Part shown: positions 10,174 to 27,425 of the stretch, in pieces
Layout: each line of letters starts with the position of its first letter
How positions within the stretch are numbered: position 1 is the stretch's first letter
Source: Guillardia theta CCMP2712
Lineage: Eukaryota > Protista > Cryptophyta
Assembly (NCBI RefSeq): GCF_000315625.1
Contig: NW_005434431.1
Location: forward strand, 26,996-64,262
Direction of reading: 5' to 3'
Length of the DNA stretch: 37,267 bases
The notes under the pieces: model-generated
Told to the model about the DNA's origin: nothing
The model's database searches: none
Seen by the model: only the letters and a program-made list of their open reading frames with translations
Translations under genes and position numbers: made by a program

Positions 10174-13100
10174 ATGGCGGCGAGACGAGGGCGAGGAGGG
10201 TCGGGATCTGCTCAGAAACAGGGGAGAGGAGCTGCTAAGGGAAAGTTTGGGGGAGAGGGTAAGGTCAGGAAGAATCCAGGCACATTCAAGGGAAGAGGAG
10301 GAAAGAGTGGCGGCAACAGATCGTTTGAAAGCCATGGAAAGAAAACCAGATCGATTTTGAGAAGAAGAAGAATTTCCATGACCACAACAAGGGAAAAGCG
10401 AATTTTGAGAAGGGCAAGTCTCCTGCAAAGGGAAAGAAGTTTTTCAAGAAGAAGGGAAGAAGAGATGAGGAAGACAGAGATTCAGATGACGTCGAGGAGG
10501 AGTTGGACATTGATGAGGGTGTGACAGACGAAGAGACAGAGCACCAGGGGAACAACAGCTCAGCGGATGAGAGCGACGACGTTGGAGGGAGGATGGAGGA
10601 CGTGGAGGAGGATGCGTTCGACTCGAAGCAGAGCTTTCCCAGCATTGCATCGACTCAGCAAGAGGAGGGAGGGGAGGAGAAGGGGAAGAAGAAGTCAAAA
10701 TCAGGAGGCTTCGAGTCCATGGGCTTCAGCTATCCCGTCTACCGAGGAATCAAGATGAAGGGATATAAGGTCCCCACCCCCATCCAGAGGAAAACCATCC
10801 CCCTCGTCCTCCGCGGTCACGATCTGGTCGCCATGGCCCGCACAGGGTCGGGCAAGACAGCTGCCTTCCTGCTGCCCATGTTCGAGAGGCTCAAGGAGCA
10901 CTCGGTCAAGGTCGGCATCCGCGCACTCATCCTCTCCCCCACCCGCGAGCTCGCGCTGCAGACGCTCAAGTTCGGCAAGGAGCTGGGCAAGTACACGGGG
11001 CTGAGGATGGCGCTGCTAGTGGGGGGCGACAGCATGGAGGATCAGTTCGCAGCGCTGGCGCACAACCCGGACGTGGTGATCGCGACGCCAGGGAGGCTGC
11101 TGCATCACCTGGAGGAGGTGGGGCTGACGCTGCAGTCTGTGCAGTACATCGTCTTCGACGAGTGCGACCGGCTGTTCGAGATGGGGTTCGCTGCCGAGCT
11201 GCGAGCCATCATGAAGAAGGTGTCGGACAACCGGCAGACCCTCCTCTTCTCCGCCACCCTCCCTGCCGCCCTCGCCGAGTTCGCTCGAGCAGGGCTCAAG
11301 GATCCGGAGCTGGTCAGGCTAGACGTGGAGACGAAGGTGTCGGATCAGCTGAGAATGGCGTTCCTGTGCGTGAGGGCAGAGGAGAGAGACGCGGCGCTGC
11401 TGTACCTGGTGAAGAACAAGATCAAGCAGGGGATCAAACCATCATCTTCGTCGCCACCAAGCATCATGTCGAGTACGTCCATGCTCTCCTCGCATCGGTC
11501 GGCATTGAGGCCTGCATGTTGTATGGGGCGATGGACCCGGCGGCCCGCAAGATCGCCATCGGGAGGTTCCGGGCGAAGCTCTCGCAGTACCTCATCGTGA
11601 CCGACGTGGCTGCTCGCGGCGTTGACATCCCGCTGCTGGAGAATGTGATCAACCACAACTTCCCCGGCAAGGCCAAACTCTTCGTCCATCGAGTAGGACG
11701 CGCGGCAAGGGCAGGAAGGAGCGGAACAGGTGAGCGGAGGAGGTTGGGGTGGAGGATGTGAGTGGAGGAGAAGAGCTGACAGGGCCGCAGCGTACTCGCT
11801 CGTGGGCCCGGAGGACGTGGCGTTGATGATCGACCTCCACCTGTTCCTCGGACGACCCCTGCAGACGTCGGACCAGTCGGAGGAGGAGAACTCGTTCGAG
11901 GCCTTCTACGGTAGGATGCCGCAGTCCCTGCTCGACGAGAGTCAGGAGATCGTCCAGCGGCTGCTGCACGACAACTCAGACCTGGCGGCTGCTCTCGCGG
12001 TCGCTCAGCGAGCGCTGGGGCTCTACAAGAAGACGATGGAGAAACCTTCGTCGCAGTCGATCCGGAGGGCCAAGGAGATGGACGAGGATGCGATCCACCC
12101 CTGGTTCCTCTCCGACGTTGACGCGTGCGAAGTCGCCGGGCAAGGGCGTCAGTTTCTCAAGGCCCTCCAGCATTTCCGCCCCCAGCAGTCGGTGCTGGAG
12201 GTTCACGACGGCACCAAGAAGGTGGCGGCCTCAGTGTCGCAGCAGATGCGAGCTCAGTTCTCCTCTGCCGTCGAGGCTCGTCGGCGAGCGCAGCAGTACC
12301 TGTCGATGACCGAGCAGATCAAGCAAGACCTCTCCGAGGAGCTGGTCGAGTCCCGCTCGCCTCCTCCCCTCGAGGACCATGCAAGCCAGAAGCGCGAGAG
12401 GCCGAGGGCCCTGAGCTCGGAGCCCAAGAAGAAGAGGAGCAGGAGCGCGATGGAAGAAGCGAAGCGACGGGACATGGAGAGCTTCCGGCTGGCGGGAGAG
12501 AAGGCTGACGCCAACACTGAGAAGGGGCTGACCATCCGCGAGGCTGCCAAGGACAGGCTGCAGAGCATCGAGCAGATGATCTTCGAGATGGACCCGGACG
12601 AGGAGGGGACGCTGCTGAAGAAGAGAGCTGTGCTGCGATGGGACTCGCGCAAGAAGAAGTTTGTCAAGGACTTTGACAGGACGCAGGACAAGACAGACGG
12701 GAAGGCGCGGATGAACGAGGCAGGAAAGAAGATCAAAAAGGGATATCGTCTTGGCCTCTACGACAAGTGGAAGGAGAGAAGGTCTGCTGCTCCTCCTGCT
12801 TTCCCCCCCCTCCCCCCCGATGTGCTTCCCTCCTCGTGCTGACACGAATGTCCCTGCAGCAAGGCGAGGATTCAGCTGGAGGGCGAGGAAGAGGACAGCT
12901 CTGTTCATCAGTCGCTTCCAGACTTCCGCAGCCGCAGGTCTCCTGCCTCCGCTCCTTCCCCCTCGTCTGAGAGCTGACGAGCGCGCAGGTTCAGGCACAA
13001 CAAGGGAGAGGCAGCGGCTGGAGGAGAAAAGCGGGGCCCGAGAGACGAGCTCAAGAGCAAGGATCAGATCAGGAAGGAGCGAGAGAAGAAACAGAATCTC

Positions 13101-13485
13101 AAAGAGAAGAACATGCCCAAGGCTCTTCGCAGGCTAGTCCCATCCACATCCTCGTCCCCTCCCTCACCCCCTCTCCTCATCTTCTCTCCCTCGCCTTCAC
13201 CTTATGGCATCATGTGTCTGATGACGATGCGTGCAGGAGGCTCGAGCAGAAGAGAAAAGAAGCCAACAAGGGCCCGAAGGTAACTCTCCCCTCCTCGCCT
13301 GTCCTCCCTGCCTCCCTGCCTCGCCTGCACCCTCGCCTCACCTCCTCCTTTTCCTACAAGTTTACCCTCTTCATCTACCCCCCTCCTCCCTCCCTCGACA
13401 CATGTCCTATCACCATGCACTGATTGTTGTCCAATAGGGCAAGCCTCATATCACAAAGGCCTCGATCCGCAAGTCCAAACGATAA
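10174..13485 (+). CDS. DBP10: ATP-dependent DEAD-box RNA helicase DBP10/DDX54 (two apparent single-base frameshifts)
   Basis: [71 protein letters not shown], plus the DBP10-type C-terminal WDSRKKKFV...YDKWK. Confidence 0.93.
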
Positions 13486-13666
13486 GGAGGAAGCGGAGGA
13501 AGAGGAGGAGGAGGAGGAGGAGGAGGAGGAGGGTGTAAACTTTGATCAATACAACAAGAATTTCACAACTTTGAGATGTAAACAAGGGTTATTTATTCAC
13601 TCACACTTATACTATATTACATCACATCGAGGCTGCTATGTACATCCTGAACTAGGTCTAGCTCTT

Positions 13667-13876
13667 TCAAACCTTCTCCTTGTGACCGCAGCTAATTATA
13701 CGGTCCTCTGCTTCCTCCCGCAAGGCTTCTACCTTACAGCGAGCAGAGAGGATGTTTTGCAGCACGAAAGACTTGCGAGGCGCCGGGGAGGACGTCGGAG
13801 ATCTGGTGCTGAGAGCGCTGGGGAGGGAAGGCTCCACGAGGGTGATGAATCGAGCAGGTCGGGCTTGGATGGTCAT
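13667..13876 (-). CDS. Microprotein paralog 1 (69 aa, MTIQARP...KSFVLQNILSARCK...)
   Basis: Shares the FVLxNILxAR motif with two neighbouring ORFs. ATG at 13876 in tcgATG context lies inside the longer called ORF 13667..14179. Confidence 0.65.
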   Translation of the reverse strand: MTIQARPARFITLVEPSLPSALSTRSPTSSPAPRKSFVLQNILSARCKVEALREEAEDRIISCGHKEKV

Positions 13877-14349
13877 CGAGACAGACGAAGGGAGAGGAGG
13901 ACTGATTGTACACGAGGAGACGTCGAAGAGAGTTCGACCGTGATGGCGTGGCAGTGGCAGGTGATGGGAGAGGAGGCGGTGAAGGAAAGAAGAAGAGGCG
14001 GCGGGGGGGGCAGGTACGTGCAAACGATTAGGAGCAAAACCGCCACGAGGTTGTGAACTTTTGTTTGCTGAAACGGAACGGTTCACATCCGTACGGTAAC
14101 TCCTGCTGCGATCACGAGGTTCTCGCACGAGCTGTTTACTACACCGGCTGCCTCCTTCAACAGCCACGTGCCCAGTCATGGCGGGTGATTAGACCGACTC
14201 CTTGGCCCGCTTGTCCCCACGTGACATTCACTTCTCGTACATGAAAAGGAGTCTTTTCGGATGTTGACCAGGAGCAAACGAGCTGTAAGGGTGGGCTTCC
14301 CTTTCCCCTATTTCCCTCCCCCGCTCTGGCTCGTCAGTTCAGTCTTACC

Positions 14350-14544
14350 ATGGCACTCAAACCTGTGCGCGGGGCTGCTGGCATGCAAAGACCAATAGCC
14401 TCGATGATATCTATAACCGATGAAAGTTGGTACTTGACGACTCATTCCTCGATCGATGCTGTCAGGCAAGACAAACCTACCAACTTTGTTCTGAACAACA
14501 TACTGAATGCGAGGAAGAAGTTAGATTGTCAAGTCCTGGCATGA
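14350..14544 (+). CDS. Microprotein paralog 2 (64 aa, ...TNFVLNNILNARKK...)
   Basis: Shared motif. accATGg start context. Confidence 0.7.
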   Translation: MALKPVRGAAGMQRPIASMISITDESWYLTTHSSIDAVRQDKPTNFVLNNILNARKKLDCQVLA

Positions 14545-15432
14545 CCCTATTCACATCTCTAGATATGCGGCTTGTCCTGAATCGCATCGCTGGATCAGCA
14601 GCCCTTATGTTCATAGGCTCGTTTGTCTCTTGTATTCTTTCTCGTCTTCTTTTCTACCGTATAATTGATGTTGTAAATACATGAACTAAAACCGTAAGTC
14701 AAAGTAGATTGTTGATGCCGCATGTCAATCATTCTTGTATCATGCAATACAAGATGGAGCCTTGATCCAAATGCGTTTGAACCAGAACTGCTCTGCCAAA
14801 CTATGGGCAGGGCTTGAGCAGTACAGAATATAAAGAACACTCTGTACTTTTGTGCTCTGACGAGATGCCTAGGCAGACAGGGTCTTGATCGTGGTCGTCT
14901 TGTTGCCTTGGCCTAGGGGAAGCTGGGTGAAGAGTGAACATATCACAATCAAGCAGGAAGCCTTGTCGCCTGATGACGCGATATCATATCGTTTACTGAC
15001 AATGGTGAGTTTGAAGTGGTCACCCGGGGCTCTACCTCGTTTCAATTCCCAACCTCTCTTCAATTCTATTATCAGCTATCTCACAGCTATCAGTGACGTG
15101 CCGGATGGTCTATAGCCAAGAATTCAAAGACCTTGTGCTGAATCCTTCAAAGATACACACCTTGCACTTCCATCGTGCGAGCGTGAAAGTCGGCGGCCTC
15201 AGCAATGACTCCCAACGTCGTCGACGGACAATACTGACCTCTTCATCGCTCGTGCTGTTGTTCCTTCATGAAACGGGGGCTCTGACTTCGACTCGCTTTC
15301 GCATCGGTTCAATCCCTGTCACGTTACCTACTCCGAAACGTTGCGATCTAGAGAGCCATTCCACAAGTTCCAAAAGCGCCTCGTTTCACCTACTTCCTAC
15401 CGGTCGTCCTCGTTGCTAGGTTTACGCCATCG

Positions 15433-15642
15433 ATGAAGCTTTGTCCTCCCCCCGCCTCTAGGAGATCAGTGCGCCTTGGCAACGTAAGCTGGACGGAAGC
15501 TGGACCTCCCAGTCAGCAGTACATCGCCGACCAGACGCAGTCAAACTTCGTGCTGGCAAACATTCTTGCTGCCAGGAAGAGATGCAGGTCGAACAAGAGC
15601 AACCGCAAAGTCGACAACATCTGCACGTTGTCATCGCCATGA
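15433..15642 (+). CDS. Microprotein paralog 3 (69 aa, ...SNFVLANILAARKR...)
   Basis: Shared motif. tcgATG start context. Confidence 0.7.
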   Translation: MKLCPPPASRRSVRLGNVSWTEAGPPSQQYIADQTQSNFVLANILAARKRCRSNKSNRKVDNICTLSSP

Positions 15643-16111
15643 CATCTCCTTCAAGCACGGAATAACTTGTGCTGCAAAAACAATACGTTCAAATGTGCAA
15701 GTAGGAAAAACGATTCGATATGCGTCTTCAAATGCGGACATGTTTCTATGTAATTTAGTTCCAACAGACTCTTCAGGTAGGCATCACTAATATCACGATG
15801 AATAAATATTACAGACACCAACTCATCAAACCAACAAGAATTTCAATCATCTTTGACTATTCTCATCATCTCATCATTTGAAATGAAAAACCTGCTCCTA
15901 TTCGAATTTCAACATGAGTGTTTCGAGCAACATTGATCCCTAATCCTATCTTCCAATGTTCCCTCTCTTCCCTCTCTTCCCTCCCCTCCCCCTCCTTGTA
16001 CAGCTCAAACATCACTCTTAGGTCAACACGCAGTTGGTTCTGTGACGTTCTTGCTTGAGCTGCTGCACTTTGTTAACGTGAACTACATTTCTATCCTCAT
16101 CTCCACCAGCG

Positions 16112-16486
16112 ATGTCGTTCACTATCTGGCAGCCATCTCTTGTTTCCTGTCCATCTATCGAGAATCATCTTCTTTCCTGCTACTTTCTGCTTCCTGCTTG
16201 TACCATCTGCAAGCTTGAGTGGCTTCATCCATCGGCTCCTCGTTCCTTCTGTTTCCGCGACCTTCTCCACCTCTCTTGCGCATCCTGTCGCAACTCGATA
16301 TCTCCTCAACTGAAGCCTTTTGTGCTCGCGGGTTTGCTTTGTTCTACTTCTGAAGGCACATATGACGTTCCCTTCAATCCTCCTCCTTCAAGAATCTTGC
16401 CCGGATTCCTCTCAGTCTGTTCCAGTCCCCTTCAACCCTCTACCGGCCTCCTCTCCCCTCCCACCTCTCTCTCCAGGAGAGACTGA
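16112..16486 (+). CDS. Possible small Cys-rich protein (two CxxC pairs)
   Basis: gcgATG start with CTIC and CASC pairs. No other support. Confidence 0.35.
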   Translation: MSFTIWQPSLVSCPSIENHLLSCYFLLPACTICKLEWLHPSAPRSFCFRDLLHLSCASCRNSISPQLKPFVLAGLLCSTSEGTYDVPFNPPPSRILPGFLSVCSSPLQPSTGLLSPPTSLSRRD

Positions 16487-16989
16487 CAAGCCTCCCTACA
16501 CCATCACAGTCTACACGTCTGTTCCGACCATGTTCCGAGCAGGTCACAGTCCGAGTTGCCGCCAGTTGGGTTCCGAGCGAGTTCCATTCCGGGTAAGTGA
16601 GGGGACGAGGTCCCGTTGGGATCCTGGCTTCGAAGTCTTAGCCAAGCCCTAGCTGCCCTAGGAATTGAGGTCCTAGTATCTGTCAAATGCCACGACATGA
16701 GTAGGCTGAGCAGTCATGAAGTGAGGATCCGGGGAGGAGAGGAGAGGAGAGTAAGAGAGCAGGAGAAGGAGGGAAGGAGGAGGAGAGAGAGAGGGAGCAT
16801 CTGGTGAGCAAGGATCAGACACTGGAGCATGAATCAGACAAGCGTCAATCACGCATACTGTTGCCTTGCAGGCTTAGTGATGTGAATGTTGATGGTGTTG
16901 TTGCAGGATGCCTTGAAGGAGCAAGCCATTGCGTGAATATTCAAAGTTGACAAGTGAATGCTCTGCATCAAGTTTGACAAGTGACAATC

Positions 16990-18626
16990 ATGGACTCTCT
17001 CAAGCTTCTCCAAGCTCTCGCCCTCCTCTTTGTCTTGACATCTGCTGTGGCCACGTCGAGCGACGGGTCTGATGTGTACGAGTGGGCTGCTGCCAACGGA
17101 GCGAACGTGAGCAAGGTGGTGCTGAGAGATGACGGGGAAGCAGGTCCAATCCTTCACGCGAAGGAAGACATCGAGGCAGGCGAAGTGATCCTCTCGCTGC
17201 CAGCGAACCTTCTCTTCCCTACACGTGTCTCCGATCACTCTCCGGTCGTGCACATGATTGAGAACACAACCATCGGAAGGATCACCGCCATCTGCTTGTA
17301 CCTCATCTCCGAGAGAGCTGACTCCAGCTCTCACTGGAAACCATGGCTGCAGTCGCTCCCTCCTCGCTTCTTCCACGCGCTGTCCTACAGCGAGGACGAC
17401 ATGCTTCACTTCCAGGCCTCGTCGTTCAAGGAGCTGCGAGACAGGAAGAAGAAGAACGTCCGACAAGAGTACGAGCAGACCGTCGCTCCTCTCCTCCACA
17501 AGCTCCCAGCCTTCGACCCTCTGCTCGCAGCAGTCGACAAGCCTCAAAATGTGACGAGAGAAGACTTCACGTACGAGGCCTTCGAGTGGGCTTACTCGGT
17601 CGTGACCACTCGCGGCATCTTTCCCGGGCTGCTGGGAGAGGAGGAGAGAGAGGGAGAGGTTCCACTGCTCGTCCTCGGCCCCCTCGCCGACAGCTTCATC
17701 CATGGCGCCAGCGGGGTCAAGATCTCCTACGACGCCCAGGAGCATCGCTGCGTCTTCTCTGCCCTGCACAAGGTGGCCAAGAACTCTCCCATCTCCATCG
17801 GCGTCGGTATGTCCTCTAACATGGAGCTGCTCGCCAACCGCGGATTCATGATGCAGAACAACGGGAACAACTTCGTGCTGATGAAGTTCCAGCTTGACAG
17901 GAACAGCGACATGCACGCGAGCGCGAGAGAGTCGATGATGAAGCAGCTGAATCTCTCCAACCCCATGACGTACGTCGTCAGGTATGGCGAGATGCCGCAG
18001 GGCCTCCTCGCCAGCCTGCGCATCCAATCGCTCTCTCCTGTAGAGTTCGGGTCCTACGGCAAGGCTCTCGCTACCCCCGTGACGCTCGAGAACGAGTGGC
18101 GGGCATATCGGCTGCTCATCTCCTCGTGCAACAGCATCCTCGCCATGTACCCCACGTGAGCTCACGCGCATGCGGCTCGCGGCTGACAGCTGACGGATGA
18201 GAGCAGGACCATCGAGGAGGACGAGATTGTGCTGACACAAACGAAGACGAGTAGACACCTGCGAGCTGCTGTCCTGCTAAGAAGAGAGGTACGTGCCGCT
18301 CGCTCCCCCGATGACTCCTCCACTCTCCGCAATTCTCGTCCTCGTCCTTCTCTGAGGCGCAACCGACGCAGGAGAAGTTGATCTACGAGTCGATCAAGAC
18401 GTGGGCCAATGGTGAGAGAAATTCGTCGACTCCTCCTCCTCCTCCTCCTCCTCCTCCTCCTCCTCCTCCTCCTCCTCCTCCTCCTCCTCACTCCTCCTCC
18501 TCACTCCTTCTTCTCCTCACTCCTTCACCTCTCCTTCCTCTCCCTCTCCCTCACATCCTCGCAGACGCCTGGGCTTCCATTCTGTACGCATCCGCTGCTC
18601 CTGCCGACGGGTCTAGCTCCCAATGA
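16990..18626 (+). CDS. SET-domain protein of the Rubisco-LSMT/SETD3 class with an N-terminal signal peptide
   Basis: AKEDIEAGEVILSLP, SHWKPWLQSLP, FEWAYSVVTTR, PLADSFIH, NMELLANRGF, and YPTTIEED (LSMT substrate-binding lobe). Hydrophobic leader LLQALALLFVLTSAVA. Three short 3' introns. Confidence 0.88.
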
Positions 18627-26734: not shown

Positions 26735-27425
26735 ACCCCTGACACCACCCCTACCCTACCCTACGCTACCTCACGCTACACTACCCTACCCTACCCTACC
26801 GTGTTGCCTTCGCACCGGAATTTCAGATTCATCTACCCCATCCTTTGACCCCACCCCCTACGTCAGGTGGTCAACCCTCACATACTCCAAAAGAGGGATG
26901 TGGGACGGGTCTGAAACTCAATATTACCCACCCTACCCCTTCTCACAGCAATCCTCCTTTTGTTACCCCTATACCCTAACTCAACACCCCCACCCCCACC
27001 CTGAAAGTGATACGGTGAAGTAAGCCTTTCCTCTACACAGTCACTACCCCCTACCCCCCTTTCTTCCCCAATTCAAGAGTTGATGGGTTGCCCCATGTCA
27101 GAAACACCCTACCCACCCTTGAACTCCCGACATGATATCACTAAAATAGAGGGGTCATCGGAAGACGTGACCTTCAACCACCGGTGGTTCTGTAGCCAAA
27201 GCTCACCTTCTACACCCCTGCCTCTGTGACAACCACCCCTACCCTTCCCAGGTGAGCTCGAAAATGTAGGCGGTGCAGGTTTCACCGGTAGGTTTTCCTA
27301 GTCAAGGTCCTAAAGTATGAGGTAGGGTACTTTCAAGGGGGCGTTGCAAGGTAGTAAAGGGGTAGGGTACTACACCCCACCCAGGTGAAATCAGGTACGT
27401 TAGCGGTACCTCAGGACCCCTTTTC
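26735..27425. promoter_or_regulatory. Divergent intergenic region: (CCCTA)-rich left part switching to GGGTA-rich right part
   Basis: ccctaccctaccctac runs at 26748-27250 and ggtagggtac motifs at 27320-27370. The role is inferred from position. Confidence 0.4.

Follow-up and report, generated by a model that had tools for sequence, protein, structure and literature searches.

The stretch of DNA analysed here, which we call the window, covers positions 26996–64262 of contig C243 (37,267 nucleotides) in the genome of Guillardia theta CCMP2712 (87.1 Mb, 669 contigs). It contains three small open reading frames (ORFs) that share the motif F-V-L-x-N-I-L-x-A-R. A first-pass annotation, made from the letters alone, had proposed that these ORFs form a cluster of intronless, paralogous microprotein genes, and all three are present as it had drawn them. 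ORF 1 lies on the minus strand at 13667–13876 (69 amino acids plus stop, isoelectric point (pI) 9.7), and ORFs 2 and 3 lie on the plus strand at 14350–14544 (64 amino acids plus stop) and 15433–15642 (69 amino acids plus stop, pI 10.5). The full-length products are all basic, with pI values of 9.5–10.5. The shared motif, which is predicted to be helical, reads FVLQNILSAR in ORF 1 (13739–13768, minus strand), FVLNNILNAR in ORF 2 (14485–14514, plus strand) and FVLANILAAR in ORF 3 (15547–15576, plus strand). When the pattern F-V-L-x-N-I-L-x-A-R was back-translated and searched for in the DNA, the window held exactly three matches (13740–13768, minus; 14485–14513 and 15547–15575, plus) versus none in 100 dinucleotide-preserving shuffles of the window, so the sharing of this motif by the trio is firm. 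Across the whole genome (87 Mb) the same pattern occurred eight times, compared to zero times for a reversed control. A word-indexed search with the trio's proteins found 0 matches in a collection of 15 billion proteins that includes NCBI's Guillardia proteins; the three genes are therefore unannotated, just as the first-pass annotation had expected that gene finders would miss them. A literature search on this gene family returned nothing relevant.

We examined RNA data over 12600–17100 from four studies, comprising one stranded raw-read run and three assembled transcriptome runs. The neighbouring plus-strand gene (12600–13468) has four splice joints, and its reads have their first mate on the plus strand; the first mate therefore represents the RNA's own strand in the stranded library. 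Transcripts over the ORFs, whose presence the first-pass annotation had left to be checked, are found for all three, as one short unspliced mRNA per ORF and on the ORF's strand. mRNA 1 (13577–13961, minus strand) is polyadenylated and about 385 nucleotides (nt) long. Its contigs in two studies span 13577–13950 at a depth of 256 (neighbour 20) and 13621–13961 at a depth of 368 (neighbour 13), and the stranded raw reads cover it at 21–49x on the minus strand versus 1–2.7x for the neighbour. A loose T15 end before 13577 in fifteen reads is the poly(A) tail of this minus-strand mRNA, and an AATAAA signal at 13592–13597 (minus strand) lies about 15–20 nt upstream of the poly(A) site. mRNA 2 (14340–14694, plus strand) is about 355 nt long, is represented by contigs at 14340–14694 (depth 94) and 14347–14691 (depth 133) as well as by stranded reads on the plus strand, and has a TGTAA at 14672–14676, close to its 3′ end. 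mRNA 3 (15411–15819, plus strand; about 410 nt) is less abundant, being assembled as two overlapping contigs (15411–15610 and 15583–15819) at a depth of 7–8, again with stranded reads on the plus strand; its AATAAA, at 15801–15806, is just upstream of the 3′ end. In three of the runs, X19, X2 and X4, each from a different study, copies 1 and 2 reach 5–30x the abundance of the spliced neighbouring gene; in the fourth, X1, they do not. Between runs, the abundance of copy 1 varies from about 0.3x to about 29x that of its neighbour.

The transcripts also help to place the start codons. In mRNAs 1 and 3 the ORF opens at the first ATG and a poly(A) signal follows the stop. ORF 1 is the internal-ATG part of a longer open frame, whose in-frame upstream ATG at 14179 falls outside the transcript. 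For ORF 2, the ATG at 14350 is only 3–10 nt from the observed 5′ end, and the in-frame ATG at 14383 may be used in mRNA 2 for this reason, giving a protein of 53 amino acids that begins MQRP. No splice joint was seen between 13500 and 16000 in the RNA data, consistent with the description of the ORFs as intronless. Because each ORF has its own complete unspliced mRNA, we can rule out that the three are first exons of larger genes or upstream ORFs; the separate mRNAs, and the first-ATG starts in mRNAs 1 and 3, uphold the view of them as microprotein genes in their own right. We conclude that each of the three ORFs is a real protein-coding gene, intronless, monocistronic and transcribed on its own, whose translation itself we infer.

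The trio does not stand alone in the genome. We built family profiles stepwise (A1, A2, A3 and A5), and a six-frame search of the genome with profile A3 gave 58 matches at E<1e-3, on 21 contigs, and 67 at E≤0.05. Further homologues, which the first-pass annotation had suggested seeking with a motif hidden Markov model, are thus plentiful. Nearly all of the matches are small open frames, and they are arranged in local clusters of 2–9 in both orientations: nine members on contig C3, five on C97, and three each on C57, C55, C22, C18, C13, C358, C8 and in the window. The three-member cluster is therefore real, but its genes do not form a private trio: they belong to a family with about 58 or more members, of which they make up one cluster. 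A core of about 12 residues, [F/A/S][V/C]-L-x-[N/S]-I-L-x-A-R-x-[K/R], is common to all of them. The members are about 50–130 amino acids long, mostly disordered and basic. Longer members carry extra motifs: an N-terminal S-F-S-I-S-L-P-x-P-S-like stretch, a well-conserved [KR]-x-hydrophobic-[RK]-L-(S/N)-P-x-Q-x-x-Y-L upstream of the helix, and a C-terminal S-x-x-D-V-T-E-G-A-x-x-L-L (D-[VI]-T-x-G).

To place the trio in this family we used a profile of 20 members, all of them from other subfamilies. Against it, the window ORFs ranked 1–3 of the 750 open frames in the window, with E-values of 4e-7, 9e-6 and 0.01, and since this profile lacks both the trio and its subfamily, their membership does not depend on circular reasoning. 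The N-terminal halves gave a different result. Scored against a profile made from the corresponding halves of the 24 sequences of alignment A5 that lie outside the window, those of copies 1 and 2 were at shuffle level (42/200 and 44/200 shuffles reach their score), and that of copy 3 was marginal (2/200). The upstream motif of the longer members was likewise not significant in copies 1 and 2 in the profile test and marginal in copy 3, where a weak version, RSVRLGNVSW, lies at 15460–15489 on the plus strand (2/200 shuffles reach its score, with the window copies excluded from the profile). The N-termini had been described earlier as unrelated, and for the trio this is essentially right. Because these halves are at most marginally related to those of the family, we regard the trio as a minimal, helix-only branch of the family.

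Elsewhere in the genome the family shows signs of recent expansion. Nine family genes lie within about 10 kb in the C3 cluster (990500–1001202), where the duplicated units are gene-sized (300–900 bp), 93–99% identical and found in either orientation; this suggests that local duplication, inversion or gene conversion is still going on. On C57 (408192–419150), three identical copies of a 103-amino-acid member (GUITHDRAFT_112215, _112217 and _112219), about 5.3 kb apart, are a very recent tandem segmental triplication; one of the C57 gene models (157 amino acids) has a differently extended C-terminus. The window trio, for its part, consists of old tandem and inverted duplicates within this family of about 60 or more members. 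Ahead of the start codon, the 250-nt regions of 20 family members often contain CT-rich (CCTCCTC-type) tracts, and 6 of the 20 regions contain a weak word, TTTACTAC (shuffle maximum 5), which the window copies lack.

Outside this genome, relatives are few. Exhaustive HMMER searching of 1.84 billion representative sequences returned eight proteins: five Guillardia 'hypothetical proteins', one protein from Hanusia phi and two from metagenomes, the latter closely similar to Guillardia copies. The Hanusia phi protein (EP00960_P046873 in EukProt, 118 amino acids) is a full-length orthologue of the C28 gene. Word-indexed searches with wider profiles gave four matches each and added two more metagenome proteins, 89–90% identical to the C6 and C28 genes. 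Several Guillardia members had already been deposited as 'hypothetical protein' (GUITHDRAFT_150361, _149058, _107222 and the three C57 copies). These proteins and the Hanusia orthologue are true homologues of the trio, with which they share the helix motif, small size, intronless layout and clustering. Unlike them, the trio is in no gene set and lacks clear upstream and C-terminal motifs. The family is so far known only from Guillardia and Hanusia.

The pattern of conservation within the motif points to the peptide as the unit under selection. The conserved residues are written with different synonymous codons in the three window copies (TTC/TTT, GTG/GTT, ATC/ATA/ATT, CTC/CTG/CTT, GCT/GCG/GCC and CGC/AGG), as the first-pass annotation had noticed. 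Averaged over the conserved motif codons of 28 distinct family copies, the entropy is 0.36 bits at the first codon position, 0.21 at the second and 1.11 at the third, and all four third bases are used in the codon for the invariant Ala. At the DNA level, the window copies resemble each other only at the motif, as a 26-nt imperfect inverted match; they are saturated at synonymous sites and yet retain the motif. In the C28-type protein, comparison of the Guillardia, metagenome and Hanusia versions shows that the x positions of the motif vary while the fixed positions are constant. Because conservation is codon-periodic and the motif is kept despite synonymous saturation, we attribute it to selection on the peptide and not to a DNA repeat, in agreement with the earlier proposal. 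Constraint over whole ORFs is less even. The ratio of nonsynonymous to synonymous substitution rates (dN/dS) is 0.15–1.0 between close paralogue pairs (small counts), and it is 1.04 between the C6 gene and its metagenome orthologue, a value based on 15 substitutions only, which are located outside the motifs. Values near 1 in some pairs indicate weak constraint over most of its length, and we describe the proteins as short constrained islands within a weakly constrained chain.

Structure prediction agrees with this picture. Given the family alignment, AlphaFold2 models copy 3 with one helix (residues 34–58) whose predicted local distance difference test (pLDDT) score is about 92 over residues 41–50, and leaves the rest disordered; the view of these proteins as disordered microproteins with one short helix is thus supported, the single confident helix in copy 3 lying over the motif. 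The window helices are amphipathic, with hydrophobic moments of 0.8–1.6. A relative of 103 amino acids (P0008) is predicted to have three helices, with pLDDT of 87–96 over residues 21–60, and its low predicted template-modelling score (0.32) indicates an extended rather than a globular shape. Searches for known domains were negative: seven members had no Pfam domain at E≤10; among PDB sequences the profile found only a chance-level match, a segment of tyrosylprotein sulfotransferase (NFVLNNTLEIKKK, 17.9 bits, E = 0.033); an ESM Atlas feature search with P0008 gave no usable match; and Foldseek against the PDB, together with an Atlas fold search, returned only non-significant extended-helix matches for the P0008 model. 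The first-pass annotation had allowed that the motif might be a fragment of a known larger domain or of a transposable-element protein, and neither a Pfam match (E≤10) nor a DNA repeat was found to suggest this. Homodimer prediction of copy 3 gave no answer (score 0.00), which is evidence neither for nor against self-association.

How might such a small, fixed helix in a drifting chain be used? We favour, at a probability of roughly 55%, the reading that these expressed genes, old duplicates of one another, encode microproteins that use the helix to dock on a conserved cellular partner. The motif helix would occupy a hydrophobic groove of that partner, by folding on it or inserting into it, and the fast-diverging Pro/Ser-rich flanks would tune affinity, localisation or turnover. 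In the longer relatives, the flanks could supply additional short contact motifs. With its many paralogues, the family would supply that partner with ligands that are interchangeable or in competition, serving either as adaptors or as titrators. The basic stretch that follows the helix is a weak hint that the site of action may be the nucleus. There are precedents for this kind of arrangement: PP1 inhibitor-2, p27Kip1, calpastatin and the plant microProteins are, as proposed for the present family, small disordered chains that contact a folded partner through short islands, their only conserved parts. They differ from it in having few paralogues, and they have no sequence relationship to it.

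Several points weigh against docking on a single partner. Whole-ORF dN/dS is about 1 in some pairs (1.04 for C6 and its metagenome orthologue, 0.93 for the C55 pair), and a family drifting towards loss could give the same values. The nuclear assignment draws on basic residues after the helix alone. Membrane binding, nucleic-acid binding and self-association are equally within reach of a single amphipathic helix, and sixty paralogues are an unusual number for the ligands of one housekeeping partner.

The third of these points can be developed into an explanation of its own, in which the products are abundant disordered proteins, self-assembling, binding to membranes or nucleic acids, or resembling dehydrins or protamines, and the basic amphipathic helix has no specific partner. 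The abundance of mRNAs 1 and 2, the basic character of the proteins (pI 9.5–10.5), the lone amphipathic helix (hydrophobic moment 0.8–1.6) in a disordered chain and the number of family copies are all what one would expect. We nonetheless consider it unlikely, though not negligible: the fixed polar residues N/S5 and R10 and the invariant small Ala9 point to a stereospecific contact, and the longer relatives carry further sequence-specific motifs. It seems distinctly less probable again that the ORFs are non-functional, that is, transcribed pseudogenes or non-coding RNAs, fragments of transposable elements, or exons of larger genes. The dN/dS values near 1 in some pairs, the taxonomic restriction of the family and the recent gene-sized duplications in both orientations in the C3 cluster could be explained in this way, but codon-periodic conservation of the motif across synonymously saturated copies could not easily be. 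Moreover, the ORFs, which begin at the first ATG, are uninterrupted, no splice joints connect them to other exons, the window copies show no DNA repeat beyond the motif and no match to Pfam or to transposon proteins, and Hanusia has a full-length orthologue. The upstream motif of the longer relatives (KLLRLSP, IKILHVSP) raises a further idea, namely that it is a closure motif captured by a HORMA protein of the Mad2 type, with the helix as a second contact. Known Mad2-interaction motifs include KILRLSGKP in Cdc20 and KVLHMSLNP in Mad1, and follow the pattern (K/R)(I/V)(L/V)xxxxxP. The family's upstream motif resembles these, and multi-exon HORMA genes are present in the Guillardia genome, on C52 at about 247 kb and on C8 at about 745.6 kb. 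However, the Pro of the relatives comes two residues earlier than in that pattern, RSVRLGNVS in window copy 3 has no Pro, copies 1 and 2 of the window have no significant match to the upstream motif, and a set of sixty Mad2 ligands would be unprecedented. We regard this idea as very improbable.

The most concrete candidate for a partner of the docking helix is Tup, and this is a specific version of the docking explanation, not a departure from it. The helix would be an eh1-like ligand of the WD40 pore of Guillardia Tup, and the stand-alone microproteins would be decoys or adaptors that modulate Tup-mediated repression. The F-V-L-x-N-I-L of the window copies has the eh1 spacing of F1-x-hydrophobic3-x-x-hydrophobic6-hydrophobic7, and family variants such as SCLDNILA come close to the published eh1 sequences FSIDNILA and FSIENILG (PMC1939712). 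Bound to TLE1, eh1 forms a short amphipathic helix (PMC1939712), and the family motif is predicted to be helical as well. Guillardia is among the organisms that possess Tup, which may bind eh1-like helices without the Phe (Copley 2016, PMC4943189). In agreement with that survey (PMC4943189), we find two Tup_N genes in the Guillardia theta genome (C2:799017–799247, plus strand, and C2:803592–803833, minus strand); they are convergent paralogues with WD40 exons and an assembly gap between them, the Tup WD40 region being divided among many small exons, with an assembly gap. The Phe is absent from most of the wider family, as in the proposed Phe-less Tup ligands.

Nevertheless, the published eh1 consensus, FS[VI]xx[IL][LM] (PMC4943189), is matched by the window copies only at F1, I6 and L7, whereas their V2 and L3 depart from it, and the wider family has V or C at position 2 where eh1 has S. 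Without an aromatic residue many amphipathic helices fit the eh1-like pattern (Copley 2016, PMC4943189), and by this warning Phe-less versions of the motif are unspecific. The most conserved positions of the family motif, A9 and R10, are not part of eh1; TLE_N (Groucho) had no match in the Guillardia genome; and the family proteins lack a DNA-binding domain (no Pfam domain at E≤10; window ORFs of 53–69 amino acids). Set beside the eh1/GEH motif of animal transcription factors, the family helix is likewise hydrophobic at positions 1, 3, 6 and 7, has a D/E-N/S pair at positions 4–5 (SCLDNILA and FVLDNILK versus FSIDNILA; PMC1939712) and is set in disordered sequence, whereas the carriers differ: eh1 sits in DNA-binding transcription factors (homeobox, forkhead, T-box) and the family helix in a stand-alone microprotein. 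The comparison with the Tup1-interaction motif of yeast MATalpha2, IxIxxLL, and with the proposed Tup motifs, [VI]xx[IL][LM] (Copley 2016, PMC4943189), is similar. The hydrophobic spacing is shared, Phe is not required, and Tup is present in Guillardia theta; but those motifs are N-terminal in DNA-binding factors and poorly specified, and the family helix is likened to them by its sequence. Taken together, we would treat Tup as the partner only as a long shot. By analogy, stand-alone eh1-like microproteins might titrate or redirect Tup, and would then form a protist counterpart of Groucho–eh1 repression that works through free decoy peptides, a speculation to which we attach similarly little weight.

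Irrespective of the partner, the annotation of Guillardia theta gains three transcribed genes, of which copies 1 and 2 are abundantly transcribed. Together the three form one of the clusters in a large family of small disordered proteins that is restricted to its lineage and united by a single 12-residue helix, a kind of family that gene finders and domain databases systematically miss and that could include major regulators in protists. If the helix does bind a conserved machine such as Tup, the family would offer a tractable handle on co-repression outside animals and fungi, and also an example of short-motif 'decoy' microproteins born of massive tandem duplication. Without a partner, it would be an ordinary orphan family.

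Further transcription was seen around the three genes. A fourth transcript, of low abundance and unspliced, lies between copies 2 and 3 on the minus strand (14935–15252) and is present in contigs of two studies and in the stranded reads. It contains no ORF of the family, and the ORF that begins at its first ATG, MKRSVLSVDDVGSHC, has 15 codons and a start that loosely resembles the N-terminal strand motif of the family. This transcript may be a decayed family member or a non-coding RNA. On the other side of the cluster, the plus-strand neighbour and mRNA 1 are arranged tail to tail, with ends a few bases apart (13436–13600): mRNA 1 has its poly(A) site at 13577, and the neighbour has TGTAA signals at about 13534 and about 13577. 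A loose contig end at 13468, which could have been taken for a splice, matches the reverse strand at 12463–12492, and we rejected it as a fold-back assembly artefact of the neighbouring gene. The last exon or 3′ untranslated region of this neighbour contains a (GAG)n run at 13485–13539.

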